Position numbers and translations under genes: made by a program. 64,000 bases of DNA from Octopus sinensis (taxonomy: Eukaryota): positions 21,142,001 to 21,206,000 of the forward strand of contig NC_043023.1 in assembly GCF_006345805.1 (NCBI RefSeq), in the 5' to 3' direction. This document shows, piece by piece, positions 43,356 to 53,840 of the stretch (positions are counted from its first letter, which is position 1; each line of letters starts with the position of its first letter). The notes beneath the pieces are model-generated. The model saw only the letters and a list, made by a program, of their open reading frames with translations, was not told the DNA's origin and made no database searches.

Positions 43356-43869
43356 AGAATGTCACATTAGGGGACAAAGACCCGTCGGTAAATGATGTTT
43401 CATCGGATAATGAAGAGCCAGAAGAGAGTGGAGCAGAATCAGATGACGAAGGATTGTTAGAGGGTGGAGAGGAATCAGAAGAGGACGGAGTCCCGGTGGA
43501 TGACGCGTCGTCAGAGGACGGTGAAGACGAGTTAGTGGATGGAGAGAAGTCAGTGGATGAAGACGAGTCAGAGGGTGAAGACTCAAATAATGGAGGACTA
43601 TGGGTGGACGACGACGAGTCAGTGGTGGGAGACGAGTCAGTGGATGAAGGCGAGTCAGCGGATGAAGACTCAAACGATGGAGGACTATCAGTGGGTGACG
43701 ACGAGTCAGTGGACGAAGAGGAGTCAGCGGATGAAGCAGATTCCGAGAGTGAAGATGAAGCAGCGACTGAGAGTCTCTTACTGAATAATGGAACGTCGGT
43801 TTCTAGCGAAACGCTTGATTCTGGAAACTCAACAACCGAAGGAGAAAGCCTTGCTGTGTCCAGTTCTCG
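43356..43869 (+). CDS. Candidate exon encoding an Asp/Glu/Ser-rich acidic segment, probably upstream of the EMI-EGF exons; 5' boundary hidden by the N-gap
   Basis: Open frame of ~171 aa with 66 D/E and three N-x-T sequons (NVT, NGT, NST). It ends TCT CG|GTAAGT (perfect donor at 43870, phase 2), matching the phase-2 acceptor at 47393. The antisense frame is also open and may be a Tx1 ORF1 remnant, so this is not certain. Confidence 0.5.
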
Positions 43870-45384
43870 GTAAGTTAATGCTTCATTCCACCCGGTTTCA
43901 CATCGCCACTTTCCTCTTCGGGGCTTCTTGTGGTTTTTTACTTTTTTCTTATTAAATAATCGGACCGTGTCTATCTTCGTGTGAATGTTTTAAGTGTTTT
44001 AGTGAAAAGAGAGGAGTTGAGCCCGTAGCTCTGTTCAGGGCCCCTGGCATATGTGGGAAGCAATGGGTGAGGTGGGGCTTGGCCCTAACGATTGCAACAG
44101 AAGGGACTCAGGGTACCTGAATTACCCCAGCATTTGTAGTTTTTATGTCGATCTGTTTTTACTTAGCCCAGTGCATCTCTGTCAGTAGGTAGAAATGAAA
44201 ACCCATAGCCTGTATATCATAACTGTATTTTTTCAAACAGTTCTCCATAGATCCCTCTTTTTCTTTAATATATGATGAGATATTCTTTTCTACTTGAGGC
44301 ACAAGGCCCGAAATTTGGAGGGAGGGGGCCAGTCGATTATATCGACCCTAGTGCGTAACTGGTACATATTTAATCGACTCCGAAAGGAAGAAAGGCAAAG
44401 TCGACCTCGGCGTAATTTGAACTCAGAACCTAACGGCAGACGAAATACCTATTTCTTTACTACTCACAAGGAGCTAAACACAGAGAGGACAAACAAGAAC
44501 AGACAAAGGGATTAAGTCGATTTTATCGACCCCAGTGTGTAACTGGCACTTAATTTATTGACCGCGAAAGGATGAAAGGCAAAGTCGACCTCGGCGGAAT
44601 TTGAACTCTGAACGTAACGGCAGACGAAATACCGCTAAGCATCTCGCCCGGCGTGCTAACGTTTCTGCCAGCTCGCTTCTTTAATACGATGAGATATTGA
44701 CATACGACTGGGCAGACGATCTCTCCTAAAAGTACTTGACTTGTTTTCCTGATCCTTGCATCAATATAGGGTCCGCTGTATTTAATCCTGTTTGCTGATT
44801 CTATTGGGATGTTCCACCAACTTTCTGGATATATTCTGGTTCTGTTGCGCCAATCTTCAACAAGCCAGATTCCTGTAACGGAGCGACGAACCTGAAGGGG
44901 CCCAAATAAAACTGTTTCAAATAATAATGATAATTAGTGTGATTTCAAATTTCTGCCACAAGAGCAGCTTGGGGTGAGGTGAGGGCGAGTCGATTACATA
45001 GAGCCTAGTCTGTTATTTTCTCGACGTTGAAAGGAAGAAAGCAAAGTGCACTTTGGGGAATTCGAAATCAGAACGGAGCGACGGGTCAAATATAGCTTAA
45101 ACAACCCTTATTCAACATCCTTAAACAACCCTTATTCAGTGAACTTTGGAGTGGGATGGGCTTCTCGACCAGAAGAAAATTCTAACTGGTCCCCACCTGC
45201 AAGATCATGCGCTATTTATCTTGATATGAGATCACCATGTCCCGCACATATGGTTGTGATGCATGTGCCTGGGGTACCCTTATCAGACGGGTAGTCATGA
45301 TGGGTATACTGAGCTTCGTATATTTTACCACGGTGTCACTTTGATGGCATGCACTGCTCTCTCACTCAATAATAATAATTTCTT

Positions 45385-47245
45385 TTTTCGCCACTAAGGG
45401 TTTACACAAAAGGGGCTGCTCATTGAAACCCCACAAAAACAACGATCACTCTGACATCTAGGGTGTATGCTCTCTTCACTTCATGTGCCCTTAATGTACA
45501 GGCGCGTACTTCTAGAAAGACCATTCACTAGGGCCATTCGAGCTACATTCACCCATCTTTTAACAAAATTGCTAGGTGGCAGCACTTCCCTCTTTACCCT
45601 CACTTTGAGATTCTGGGTAAAGAGGAAAGTGTCTGTCTTCAGCCCTTTCAGCAAGGTCCACCAGGCAACCTCTTTCGCTATGGCCACTAGACTAAGCAAA
45701 GATGCCTGTCCCTCCCGGTTGGAAGAAAGCAGCGGGCTGATCCTTACCAATAACTTAGCTGAAATCCGAATCCGTCCTCCAAGTGGGAGCAGTTCTTCGA
45801 TGATAAGCGCCGACCCCTTTGCTAACAGCCTGCTCGAAAGTTTGATGTCTGTGTTCAGCAGCGTTATGAACCTAGTTTTCTATTTCATCTCCCTTGTTTG
45901 GGTCCATTTTTAGCAGTGCCACCGCTCCTAGACTCACAGAATTGGGAAATGGCCTGTTCTGGTACCAGTTACGGTAGCAGTTCTGGCAGATCTACTAGAA
46001 GGCTGTCAAACAAAGGCGGATCGTTAGCACGACGGGAGAAATGCTTAGCGGTATTTCGACAGCCGTTACGTTGTGAGTTCAAATTCCGCCGAGGTCGACT
46101 TTGCCTTTCATCTTTTCGGGATCGATTAAATAAGTACCAGTAACACACTGGGATCGATATAATCGACTTAATCCGTTTGTTCATCCTACGTTCTGGATAT
46201 CTTTACGTTCCACACATTTGCCAAAGGGATCTTGAAATACCTCACACATCTTCTCCGGTTGGAGTTCCTTGCGCCCATTTTGGTCCACCAAAGACTGAAT
46301 AGTGACTTTGCTTTGACGTTGTGCGTCTGTCATTCGACCCCCATTATGGGGCTTTCCTTCCCTCTTCTCTTACAGAGTGCACCTTAGATCTGACAAGGCA
46401 ACCTTCGTGTTTATCTTTGAGCAAATGGTCCAGAGCTAATCTTGCAGCAAGCAGGTCAGCTGCAATGTTCTTCCAAAGCGCCATTTCGAAGTTACTGACT
46501 AAATTCCCTTCTGTTTTATCCATCTCTACCACTAATGCTTTAATAAACCTACCTAACGCCAACCATCATTTGTTGTTGACGATTAGCCCCATCAACGCCA
46601 TCTTAGTTAATTGTCTAATTCGGTCTCTGTTGGATTGGCACTTTGGGAGCAACGCTTTCAGCCTCCAGTAACCGGATCCCTGCCTTCTAAGCCTATCTAG
46701 GTTAACAACTTCTACTAACGTTAATCTACTTGCCTATAGAACCCCGTTCCTCATCAAAATACGACCTGGTTGACCCCATACAGGCTTTTACCATCCGCTT
46801 TCTATTCGCTAGACCCACACAGTCCAATTGTATCTCTAAGGCACCGTACCAGTTGCCCACTAACTCTAAATTTCGAGGCATTCCTAGGAATACCTCTCGA
46901 TGTCTGAAGATATACGGCTTCCCTGCTTCTATCGGAGTATAAACAGGTACCTGTCTGTAAGTACCCCCGTCACTACAATTCGCATCCAGGACCATCATCT
47001 CTCCTTCTGGATCCAGGAAGATAGTCCTTATGTTGAGATCCATGCCCCTACGGATCAACGCCGCCGTTCAACCTCCGATTCCCGGTTGACATGGAGATAA
47101 ATACTTCTCGTATCCCGCGAAAGATGGCAAGAAAGCATGTCGGTCGGAAAGTCTAGTTTCACTGATGGCGATTACATCGACACTTAGTGATCTAATGTCG
47201 TTGAGTAGTGGCCTTGTTTCCAAGGCGATCGCAAGTCAGTTCTTT
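45385..47245 (-). mobile_element. Decayed, internally deleted L1/Tx1-type LINE ORF2 (APE domain, linker, C-terminus), with a SINE insert at 46010-46190
   Basis: LLNDIRSLSVDVIAISETRL and FLDPEG..VLD..VPVYTP..LVGNW (APE-like); LVRSK linker at 46344-46562; LVAIAKEVAWWT..F..RW C-terminus at 45481-45750. No RT core is visible. Confidence 0.75.
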
Positions 47246-47392
47246 GTATATTCGTCTTTTTATATCTCTGGAACCCCCCACCCATTCCTTCAAGGGATTT
47301 TATTTTTATAGTGTTATATGCGTTTATATGTATATGTATATATATTTATACACACACACACACTTATATATTCCTTCTTTCTTTTTTTCCAG

Positions 47393-47485
47393 GGGAATAT
47401 GTCGAGTGAGATGTTATAAAACCGTGACCTACAAAAGGGCCCGAAGAAGCTGGTGCTGGTTTTTGAGACGGTGTACAAAATACCG
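47393..47485 (+). CDS. EMI-domain exon 1 of Arg-rich EMI-EGF protein (GICRVRCYKTVTYKRARRSWCWFLRRCTKY)
   Basis: Polypyrimidine tract ttccttctttctttttttccAG before 47393 and donor GTAAAT at 47486. Length 93 nt, phase 2 to 2. Cys spacing C..C...C-x5-C-x2-YR is typical of the EMI N-terminal half. Confidence 0.85.
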
Positions 47486-48005
47486 GTAAATACGAAGCCA
47501 CCTTTCCGGATTTTCTATACAGAGTAAACTTTCAATATTACGGCATCCACCGATGACAAAGTATTCATTACCCTCGCACATTAATATCTTAATATTTCGC
47601 TTGGGCATAGCGAAAATAACAATATGGTGTAGAACTCAATCTAGGTGTGATCCAGAATTCAATTGTAGATAAGTGTAAAATGGTAAGAGAAAGCAAAGAA
47701 ATGGCACCGGCAAAAACAAAGGTTATGTAACGCACTTCATTGGCTAACAGCTGTTTCTGATGTAGGTTGTGGTGGAGGATTAGTTGAGTACCAGGATATC
47801 ATGCTCTAGCTTCATCAGAGCCTTCAATGTGAAAAGCACTTTATTTAGGATAATCGCATTTTCAGACTACACAGTCGTATATTCTGAAAGTGTAACTTGT
47901 ATGTGTGTATGTATGTGTTTGTGTGGTTGTCTGAACTTACCATCATTGTGTTATATATCCTTCTGGTTATATATCCTTTTATTCTATCCTTCTCTCATTT
48001 AACAG

Positions 48006-53124: not shown

Positions 53125-53244
53125 CCGTCGGAGGACCGTGCAGATGGAATCGGTGCGGGAGAAATGGTAGATGCGTCAAGAGAGGAACCTCTTTCACTTG
53201 TTACTGCAGACGGGGCTATTATTTCAATAGAAGAACATGTGTTG
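53125..53244 (+). CDS. EGF-like exon 3, recent duplicate of exon 1 (AVGGPCRWNRCGRNGRCVKRGTSFTCYCRRGYYFNRRTCV)
   Basis: Acceptor ctttccAG, donor GTAAGT at 53245. Length 120 nt, phase 1-1; only a few substitutions versus 49301-49420. Confidence 0.92.
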
Positions 53245-53335
53245 GTAAGTAAAGGACAAACAGCAGCTACAAGAACAATATACACACGTATATCTATAAG
53301 CAATTGGCTGGGAGATAATAATAATAATAATAATA

Positions 53336-53407
<72 letters not shown>

Positions 53408-53712
53408 AAGAAGAAAAAAGATAATAATAATTAATTCGCTTATTCGCCACAAGGGCTAACAAAAATCAATTATACCATAAAGGGACAAAACACAGGACTA
53501 AAGTTACAAAGTGTTTTTCCGTTTGAAAAATCCGTGTAAAAATCAGTGTAACAACGAACATATTTAATGTCACAAACTTTTGGGGGAATCGGTCTAGTCG
53601 ATTACATCGACCCCAGAGTATAACTGGTGCTTATTACATTGACCCAACCCCAAATAATGCATCTGTTTTATATACATGCAATTAAGTGCAATAAATTTGT
53701 TTTCATTTGCAG

Positions 53713-53840
53713 ATGTAAACGAGTGTAGAAGGAGTTTTCGATGCGGTAGATACGGGAAATGCGTCAACACAATAGGGTCCTACAAATGTTTGTGTAAACC
53801 AGGGTTCCGTTTCAATGGGAGAACATGTGTTCGTAGATAA
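53713..53840 (+). CDS. Terminal calcium-binding EGF exon 4 ([42 protein letters not shown])
   Basis: Acceptor tttgttttcatttgcAG; DVNEC cbEGF consensus; in-frame TAA at 53838-53840. No further EGF exon was seen downstream. Confidence 0.9.

Follow-up and report, generated by a model that had tools for sequence, protein, structure and literature searches.

What does a gene encode when a strongly acidic exon stands ahead of a strongly basic, cysteine-rich array of EGF modules, and why should one protein carry both? The question is raised by a locus of Octopus sinensis within a stretch of 64,000 nucleotides (nt) of contig NC_043023.1 (assembly GCF_006345805.1, forward-strand positions 21,142,001 to 21,206,000), hereafter the window, whose own numbering is used throughout. 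An earlier reading of the letters (the original prediction) had proposed here an unannotated secreted-type protein combining a hyper-cationic EMI-EGF part with a charge-balancing acidic pro-segment. The evidence assembled below indicates that the window gene belongs, as its most extreme representative, to a small and uncharacterised family of secreted proteins that evolves fast and has been found so far in Octopus only. The parts of the gene are as follows:

43256-43355, unstranded: assembly gap of 100 N, which truncates the 5′ end of exon 1.
43356-43869, + strand: visible part of exon 1, an acidic disordered pre- or pro-region; donor GTAAGT, split Arg codon CG/G (here and below, the slash in such strings marks an exon or cleavage border).
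47393-47485, + strand: exon 2, 93 nt; first half of a basic 8-Cys domain, the N-domain (GICRVRCYKTVTYKRARRSWCWFLRRCTKY).
48006-48082, + strand: exon 3, 77 nt; second half of the N-domain, with the EMI-like CCRGWTGTPGRC motif.
49301-49420, + strand: exon 4, 120 nt, phase 1-1; EGF1, non-calcium-binding (AVGGAC...), net +10.
50948-51067, + strand: exon 5, 120 nt; EGF2, a degenerate calcium-binding EGF (cbEGF) module (YRNEC...INTPGSY), net +9.
53125-53244, + strand: exon 6, 120 nt; EGF3, a recent duplicate of EGF1.
53713-53840, + strand: exon 7; EGF4, a canonical cbEGF module (DVNEC...VNTIGSY), the module itself ending at 53832.
55154-55164, + strand: probable terminal coding micro-exon, ttttcag/GTATCGGCTAA (-IG-stop), followed by the 3′ untranslated region (UTR).

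The basic part, encoded by exons 2 to 7, is considered first. A polypyrimidine tract and AG precede each of its six exons, a GTAA(A/G) donor follows every one except the last, and the joined exons form a single stop-free frame of 218 amino acids (aa) beyond the junction Arg. In the product, Pfam recognises four EGF stretches (EGF_3, 1.8e-19; cEGF, 2.4e-19; EGF_CA, 5.6e-15) with scores well beyond the gathering cut-offs: 70.1 bits against 28.5 for EGF_3, 69.3 against 26.6 for cEGF, 55.7 against 27 for EGF_CA, whose model matches two stretches, and 48.3 against 21.5 for EGF. EGF proteins from the PDB (ADGRE5, LTBP1, Notch, fibrillin, and uromodulin) match the same part down to 4.7e-25. On these matches, the Arg-rich frame can be taken as the coding one, and the six exons with canonical sites and matching phases, as well as the four EGF modules that had been proposed, are borne out. 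An acidic +1 frame that stays open across the EGF exons (e.g., the open reading frame (ORF) at 49274-49801, PSEERADGIGAGRMVDASGEEPLLLVTADG...) was considered as a second gene and rejected, since only the Arg-rich frame yields EGF domains; the open +1 frame is a compositional by-product of the AGA/GGA-rich codons, which become GA-rich on shifting. The window gene thus reads as a real, intact protein-coding gene. The 64-kb window holds no second copy of it, and a 5.8-billion-protein collection contains no protein model for it; the best match in that collection is a partial orthologue, P0004, with 86% identity over 26% of the basic query.

The composition of this body is extreme. Its 218 aa include 50 Arg (51 with the junction residue), 9 Lys, 1 Asp, 2 Glu, 32 Cys, 15 Tyr, 11 Phe, and 6 Trp, giving a net charge of +56 and an isoelectric point (pI) of 10.8, so that the hyper-cationic, Arg/Cys-rich body first described as 219 residues stands as 218 aa plus the junction Arg. 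Together, Arg, Tyr/Phe/Trp, and Gly make up 108 of the 218 residues. Arg accounts for 23% of the body vs 9-11% in the paralogues, Lys is depleted, and 30 of the 50 Arg codons are AGA, a codon one step from AAA or GGA. The cbEGF consensus D-x-(D/N)-E-C ... N ... (Y/F) is complete in EGF4, partial in EGF2, and missing in EGF1 and EGF3 (AVGGxC), and all three acidic residues of the body are calcium-ligand positions of the YRNEC and DVNEC motifs. Retention of acidic residues solely at these positions argues for selection on a folded domain rather than decay. It appears that the fold and the calcium sites were kept while nearly all free positions became Arg, aromatic, or Gly.

The relatives of the window gene retrieved by homology are the following:

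P0004: UniParc UPI00069532CB, a truncated model of the orthologue.
P0003: XP_014783437.1, O. bimaculoides, named “ADGRE2”; locus L001 (LGKD02103728.1).
P0001: CAI9741403.1, O. vulgaris, named “fibulin-1-like”.
P0006 and P0008: XP_029651374.2 and XP_036369591.1, O. sinensis, named “LTBP2-like”.

P0004 is very probably an O. bimaculoides model of 2015, the species being suggested by a UniParc accession near that of P0003 and by an intron tail that agrees with the O. bimaculoides paralogue at 24 of 26 positions. It consists of a translated 5′ UTR, a signal peptide MKNLVLFLFVFVVGLWVTEGQ, a 238-aa acidic region of net charge -82, and ...GNSTTEGESLAVRRSRGLCRVRCYKTVTYK..., and beyond the equivalent of 48082 it continues into intron sequence (GKNMFSVL = gtaagaacatg), a pattern that an incompletely spliced transcript would give. 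Across the acidic region and the N-domain, it is 68% identical to the window protein, with a 47-residue gap due to a different number of repeats. P0001, P0003, and P0006/P0008 show the same order of parts as P0004, and the signal peptide is conserved among the homologues (consensus MK(N/K)LV.FL..FVV), so that the window protein may be regarded as secreted by homology.

The family also has a common exon plan, as seen at loci L001 and L003: one exon codes for both signal peptide and acidic spacer, two more measure 93 nt and 77-78 nt, EGF exons of 120 nt follow, and a short coding exon of 11-17 nt ends the gene. The 93-nt exon 2 has a counterpart of the same length in L003 (12810-12902) and an equivalent in L001 (15548-15637). 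The window gene follows this plan, carries the GNSTxEGExL motif that is conserved ahead of the junction in all family members, and is collinear with L001 from the end of exon 1 through the 3′ UTR. At least two members lie in a tandem cluster on O. sinensis CM016884.1, about 150 kb apart and in the same orientation; the window overlaps neither of the O. sinensis loci L002 and L003, and only transposon copies match (up to 96.7%). The annotated paralogues are 195-351 aa long and end just past the EGF array. When the window protein, P0001, and P0006 were examined with Pfam, and P0003 through its precomputed Pfam list, domains of the EGF type only were obtained; membership in the fibulin-1, LTBP, or ADGRE2 families was rejected, as anaphylatoxin, fibulin C-terminal, TB, GAIN, and 7TM domains are lacking. 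Literature searches on octopus EGF-type and gland or adhesive proteins yielded nothing on this family. The decapodiform cephalotoxin (deca-ctx) family, reported absent from octopuses, is unrelated. A further RefSeq entry, P0002 (“fibulin-1-like”, start MGRREC...), looks 5′-truncated, with a P0001-like N-domain and first cbEGF module encoded upstream (L002 7567-7695 and 9905-10048, on CM016884.1).

The acidic exon abuts the 100-N gap directly. Its visible part encodes 171 aa with 30 Asp and 36 Glu (net charge -63, pI about 4.05), contains three N-glycosylation sequons (NVT, NGT, and NST), and carries 2.6 copies of an 87-nt (29-aa) tandem repeat (TRF period 87, 81% matches), whose length is a multiple of three. 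Its C-terminal end is the family-conserved motif SGNSTTEGESLA, followed by the split Arg codon. The upstream exon of about 171 aa with 66 Asp/Glu and three sequons, ending at 43869 before GTAAGT, is therefore as originally described, except that its “many” S-x-E sites were overstated: the strict count is 3 (13 for S-x-[DE]). The whole window was searched with the N-termini of the orthologue and paralogues at very permissive settings, and no signal-peptide exon was matched; likewise, residues 1-80 of P0004 (5′ UTR, signal peptide, and first acidic residues) have no counterpart anywhere in the window. As nothing was found elsewhere in the window and the paralogues hold the signal peptide and acidic spacer on one exon (L001 10001-10180, L003 10001-10264), the signal peptide, the start codon, the 5′ UTR, and about 20 further residues most likely fall in the 100-N gap.

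That this exon belongs to the gene is well supported by comparison. P0004 reads continuously across the equivalent junction (...GESLAVRRSRGLCRVRCYK...), the border between exon 1 and the N-domain is the same in three paralogous genes, and the window and L001 are collinear; since P0004 and the three paralogues keep the same order of parts, the 43869 to 47393 junction, and with it the joining of the acidic to the basic part assumed in the pro-segment model, appears sound. The residues at the border are more variable. The window has SSSR/G, a monobasic sequence with no base at P4 or P6, P0004 has RRSR/G (RRSR/GLCRVRC), P0001 and P0006 have KR/T, and P0003 has no site; the KR/T and RRSR/G sequences sit exactly at the exon 1/2 border. 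Cleavage at the junction Arg, raised earlier as a possibility, is thus favoured by the good site of P0004 and the dibasic site of two paralogues, but not by the poor site of the window or its absence from P0003.

The N-domain comprises 55-56 aa with 8 Cys ahead of the EGF array, and in the window it is 84, 64, 56, and 47% identical to those of P0004, P0001, P0003, and P0006, respectively (alignment A3). The invariant residues C3, C7, K9, Y13, R18, C21, C27, Y30, C41, C44, C45, G47, W48, G50, P52, G53, and C55 are all present in the window, and CCRGWTGTPGRC represents the C-terminal motif CC-x-G-(W/Y/F)-x-G-x(2,3)-C, the spacing of which is invariant in five family members. This region had been labelled EMI, and an EGFL7/8-MEGF/Nimrod architecture had been deduced from it. 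An EMI domain has about 70-75 aa and 7 Cys. The Pfam EMI model (PF07546) does not match the window N-domain at E <= 10, and the best score in the family, that of P0003 (E = 0.26, 12.5 bits against a cut-off of 25), covers profile positions 47-69 only. An exhaustive comparison of an N-domain profile with 1.84 billion representatives retrieved P0001, P0003, P0004, P0006, and one spurious repeat protein, but no EMI protein; the domain was thus met in only 4 protein clusters, all from Octopus. No PDB chain matched the profile at E <= 10. Further searches with the profile and with the N-terminal 166 aa of P0001 gave 0 matches and missed the known members too, which we take to reflect a word-index limit and not absence. 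In the AF2 model of P0003, a long beta-hairpin and a small one make up the N-domain, predicted with a per-residue confidence (pLDDT) of 84-87, and the pre-region falls below 50; Foldseek matches of this model to the PDB were all driven by EGF modules and are uninformative on the N-domain. The EMI identity is therefore not established, and the architecture deduced from it loses its support since EMI fails in both the Pfam and profile searches. EGFL7, EGFL8, and other EMI-EGF proteins share with the window protein a Cys-rich N-domain ending in CCxG(W/Y)xGxxC and followed by EGF and cbEGF modules, but differ in that the window N-domain is a 55-56-aa, 8-Cys unit unmatched by Pfam EMI; the Pfam and profile searches showed no homology to EGFL7 or EGFL8 outside generic EGF modules.

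An acidic pre-region is paired with a basic body in all members of the family, although the net charges differ greatly:

P0003: pre-region -5, body +15.
P0006: pre-region -9, body +17.
P0008: pre-region -9, body +16.
P0001: pre-region -9, body +33.
Window gene: pre-region -63 (incomplete), body +56.
P0004 (truncated model): pre-region -82, N-domain +18, remainder unread.

The two parts of the window protein sum to about -7, and near balance is seen in the window lineage only. N-domains carry +11 to +18 in 55 aa across the family, and a single EGF module carries +9 to +10 in the window vs -1 to +8 in the paralogues. Compared with these Octopus paralogues, the acidic region of the window is 5-10 times more charged, and two EGF modules have lost the cbEGF motif; a long acidic block is common to the window and P0004 only. 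The charge balance originally given as about -64 vs +57 therefore holds insofar as the halves nearly cancel (-63 vs +56), but as a feature of the lineage and not of the family. In this lineage, the 87-nt repeats lengthened the acidic block to a charge of at least -63, and the body reached +56 through substitution of Arg at almost all non-structural positions and through duplication of an EGF pair. Such a paired shift, though seen in one lineage only, is the pattern expected if the opposite charges are functionally coupled.

The duplication in the body appears to be young. The exon block at 49213-49605 is repeated at 53037-53431 with 90.6% identity, the EGF1 and EGF3 exons differing at 6 of 120 nt (95% identity; flanks 94 and 86% identical), and the resulting amino acid changes are conservative (A/P, K/R, and R/K). 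Exon duplication and exon-skipping isoforms occur elsewhere in the family, where a single duplicated 120-nt EGF exon distinguishes P0006 from P0008, and in the acidic block the number of repeats differs between the window and P0004. Between the window and L001, the cbEGF exon is 73% identical vs 93% for its intron flanks (Fisher p = 1.5e-4), although the pooled exons 48006-48082 and 50948-51067 vs all aligned intron give p = 0.07; P0004 and P0003 agree at 24/26 positions in the intron tail and at 14/26 in the preceding exon. Values of dN/dS (the ratio of nonsynonymous to synonymous divergence, Nei-Gojobori), computed on short paralogous comparisons, range from 0.3 to 1.2 despite an invariant Cys/Gly scaffold. 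Coding divergence that equals or exceeds that of the adjacent intron suggests relaxed or diversifying selection. Across the family, the signal peptide is conserved and the mature part diverges. Together with tandem duplication and an apparent restriction to one lineage, such a contrast is usual in secreted interface proteins serving defence, venom, reproduction, or adhesion, and not in conserved genes of the matrix or of signalling. The introns around exon 3 (window 47592-48680, L001 19440-20536, about 1.1 kb) are 73% identical upstream and 84% downstream of an exon that is itself 77% identical, which could result from gene conversion between cluster members or from a conserved intronic element.

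The C-terminal end requires a correction. Exon 7 had been drawn as 53713-53840, and its start and coding frame are retained, but its end is very likely 53832: EGF4 then has 120 nt, as in every other EGF exon, and would be spliced to the micro-exon 55154-55164. At the end of the EGF array, the paralogues have ...TGTGTTG/GTAAGT spliced to a micro-exon, and the window micro-exon GTATCGGCTAA with its acceptor matches the last exon of the O. bimaculoides paralogue letter for letter, within a region (54767-55546) collinear with L001 26806-27612. In the window, the terminal donor is changed from G/GTAAGT to C/GTAGAT, and read-through past 53832 meets TAA two codons on (53838-53840). The predicted C-terminus is either ...TCVRIG-stop (spliced) or ...TCVRR-stop (read-through), and the gene may be in the middle of a switch from the -IG end to the -RR end.

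The closest functional parallel is found in proteins of other folds. Eosinophil proMBP consists of an acidic pro-part (pI 3.9) that neutralises Arg-rich MBP (pI 10.9), giving a precursor with pI 6.2 (PMC2189086). As in the window protein (pI about 4.05 and 10.8), the acidic part lies N-terminal to an Arg-rich, disulfide-bonded part, and the precursor is near-neutral; the adjacent acidic (-63, 171 aa seen) and cationic (+56, 218 aa) parts of the window protein are of similar charge size, as is characteristic of charge-neutralised pro-proteins. The two differ in fold, a C-type lectin vs an N-domain with an EGF array, and share no homology; moreover, the cleavage and toxicity of MBP have been demonstrated, those of the window protein are putative, and its junction motif is weak. 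Charge-neutralised prodefensins follow the same logic as proMBP. A second parallel is provided by the mussel plaque proteins Mfp-2/Mgfp-2 and Pvfp-5beta, which resemble the window protein in being secreted tandem EGFs with a stable fold and a cationic, aromatic surface; they differ in relying on Lys and Tyr (DOPA) rather than Arg and in having neither a cis acidic block nor the N-domain, and no specific sequence relationship was seen beyond the EGF fold. By analogy, we infer that the window protein operates in the manner of a charge-neutralised pro-protein and perhaps also of an EGF-type adhesive, while being homologous to neither.

On this basis, the reading that we tentatively favour, at somewhat less than an even chance, is that of a charge-masked polycationic secreted effector that binds polyanions. 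The acidic tail would fold back on the polycationic, disulfide-stiffened rod during folding, transport, and storage, and such masking would keep the protein soluble and harmless to the secretory cell. A proprotein convertase cutting behind the junction Arg (orthologue sequence RRSR) could bring about unmasking, as could an ionic shift on release, whereupon the freed rod would bind polyanionic targets through its Arg and aromatic surfaces. Microbial envelopes, sulfated mucus, and matrix glycans are candidate targets, and the outcome would be a host-defence or surface-interface effector; that its activity is antimicrobial, cytotoxic, or adhesive we purely infer. A broader proposal, possible but doubtful, is that octopods evolved a secreted effector family of their own, built on a rigid, disulfide-stapled EGF rod as polycation scaffold, with a charge of about +1 for every 4 residues that is due almost wholly to Arg. 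In the window gene, this rod would have co-evolved with a repeat-expandable polyanionic tail of the same chain, and the genetically encoded, self-neutralising pair would be either a caged agent with antimicrobial or cytotoxic action or a coacervating material of one component. Literature searches found no EGF-domain protein with such a self-neutralising polyelectrolyte design.

Several points weigh against the charge-masked effector. The paralogues are far from neutral (-5 to -9 vs +15 to +33, summing to +7 to +24), which rules out masking as what the pre-region does in general. Electrostatic masking would also be weak at seawater ionic strength. The window junction SSSR/G, with no upstream basic residue, is a poor convertase site, and P0003 has none at all. 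The signal peptide is absent from the visible window sequence, the 5′ end of exon 1 being in the gap, and the terminal donor is weakened. Finally, the dN/dS values, coming as they do from short, paralogous alignments, are no proof of positive selection.

The poor junction site counts in favour of the main alternative, namely that the chain is never cleaved and acts as a diblock polyampholyte material, in which tails and rods of different molecules bind one another, pack neutrally or coacervate in granules, and set on release into a cohesive or adhesive gel such as the cement of egg stalks or spermatophores or the mucus of suckers or skin. The near-exact charge balance within one chain, the cation-pi “sticker” composition of the body (Arg, Tyr/Phe/Trp, and Gly), and the variable repeat number of the acidic block, typical of material proteins, all agree with it, as does the coacervation of mussel Pvfp-5beta, a plaque protein of two folded EGFs with a positively charged face (PMC9314366). 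We nevertheless consider it rather unlikely: a good furin-type site marks the junction of the orthologue, the paralogues are not charge-balanced and their acidic regions are short, a DOPA or Lys signature is lacking, and simple complex coacervation is screened at high salt.

An ordinary extracellular-matrix or signalling EGF protein of the fibulin-1-, LTBP2-, ADGRE2-, or EGFL7-type, with incidental charge, would explain the PDB matches to fibrillin, LTBP, Notch, and ADGRE5, the names given to the relatives by RefSeq, and the EMI-like CCxGWxGxxC motif. It is clearly unlikely, given that Pfam finds none of the accompanying domains of such proteins in P0001, P0006, and P0003, that the Pfam EMI threshold is missed, that the N-domain profile is limited to four Octopus clusters, and that rapid divergence, duplication in tandem, and so extreme a composition are not what conserved genes for matrix or signalling proteins show. 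That the locus is a non-functional or decaying recent duplicate (a pseudogene or an unexpressed copy) seems quite improbable. The lack of a matching protein model in the collection, the loss of the 5′ end in the gap, the mutated terminal donor with a stop two codons later, and EGF1/EGF3 exons barely better conserved than their flanks would all be expected of such a copy. On the other hand, about 390 codons are free of stops and frameshifts, all 32 Cys and the calcium-site residues are intact, EGF1 and EGF3 differ conservatively, and the orthologue is known as a transcript-like model; either C-terminal outcome gives a complete protein, and removal of the start codon by the gap explains the missing annotation. 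A biomineral or calcium-handling matrix protein (of the statolith or stylet), for which the Asp/Glu/Ser-rich low-complexity block with 13 S-x-[DE] sites would bind calcium next to the cbEGF modules, is very improbable, for although the shell-matrix proteins of molluscs do include acidic low-complexity regions as well as EGF-like domains, such proteins do not require a +56 Arg-rich body, the acidic regions of the paralogues are short, and the family is apparently limited to Octopus and fast-evolving.

Should the charge-masked effector prove correct, an EGF module of adhesion and signalling would have been re-tooled into a hyper-cationic effector or material with a built-in polyanionic cage. The family would then open a way into the innate defence and secretions of cephalopods, of which little is known in molecular terms, as well as a natural design for salt- or protease-switchable polyelectrolyte proteins. 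It is also small enough for tracing the co-evolution of opposite charges (-5/+15, -9/+17, -9/+33, and up to -63/+56), and its description corrects the misleading automatic names of the relatives (fibulin-1-like, LTBP2-like, and ADGRE2-like).

Beside the P0003 gene, L001 contains at 35867-37215 a call for a 712-aa thermolysin-like metalloprotease (Peptidase_M4 and M4_C) of a mainly bacterial family, which may be a horizontally acquired gene or a contaminant. In the window itself, the remaining features are repeats:

8133-9095, - strand: retrotransposon remnant, a 320-aa ORF with reverse transcriptase RVT_1 (E = 2.7e-22).
4319-4687 (- strand), 7178-7537 (- strand), and 13068-13421 (+ strand): ORFs resembling fragments of similar elements.
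444-1470, 11011-11808, 25451-26247, 12020-12400, 36185-36562, and 51868-52260: short interspersed repeats, among others.
9673-10749, 29206-30778, and 39640-40988: microsatellite or low-complexity arrays.

The retrotransposon at 8133-9095 is present as the same element at the O. sinensis locus L002 with 96.7% identity. The interspersed repeats, some of which lie inside introns of the gene, are 85-95% identical to O. bimaculoides and O. sinensis loci and are the source of most cross-species DNA matches. Among the arrays, which are long, are roughly 1-kb runs of the (ATT/TAA)n type and a CA/TG-rich tract of 1.5 kb, the latter accounting for a bump in GC skew at 26-32 kb.

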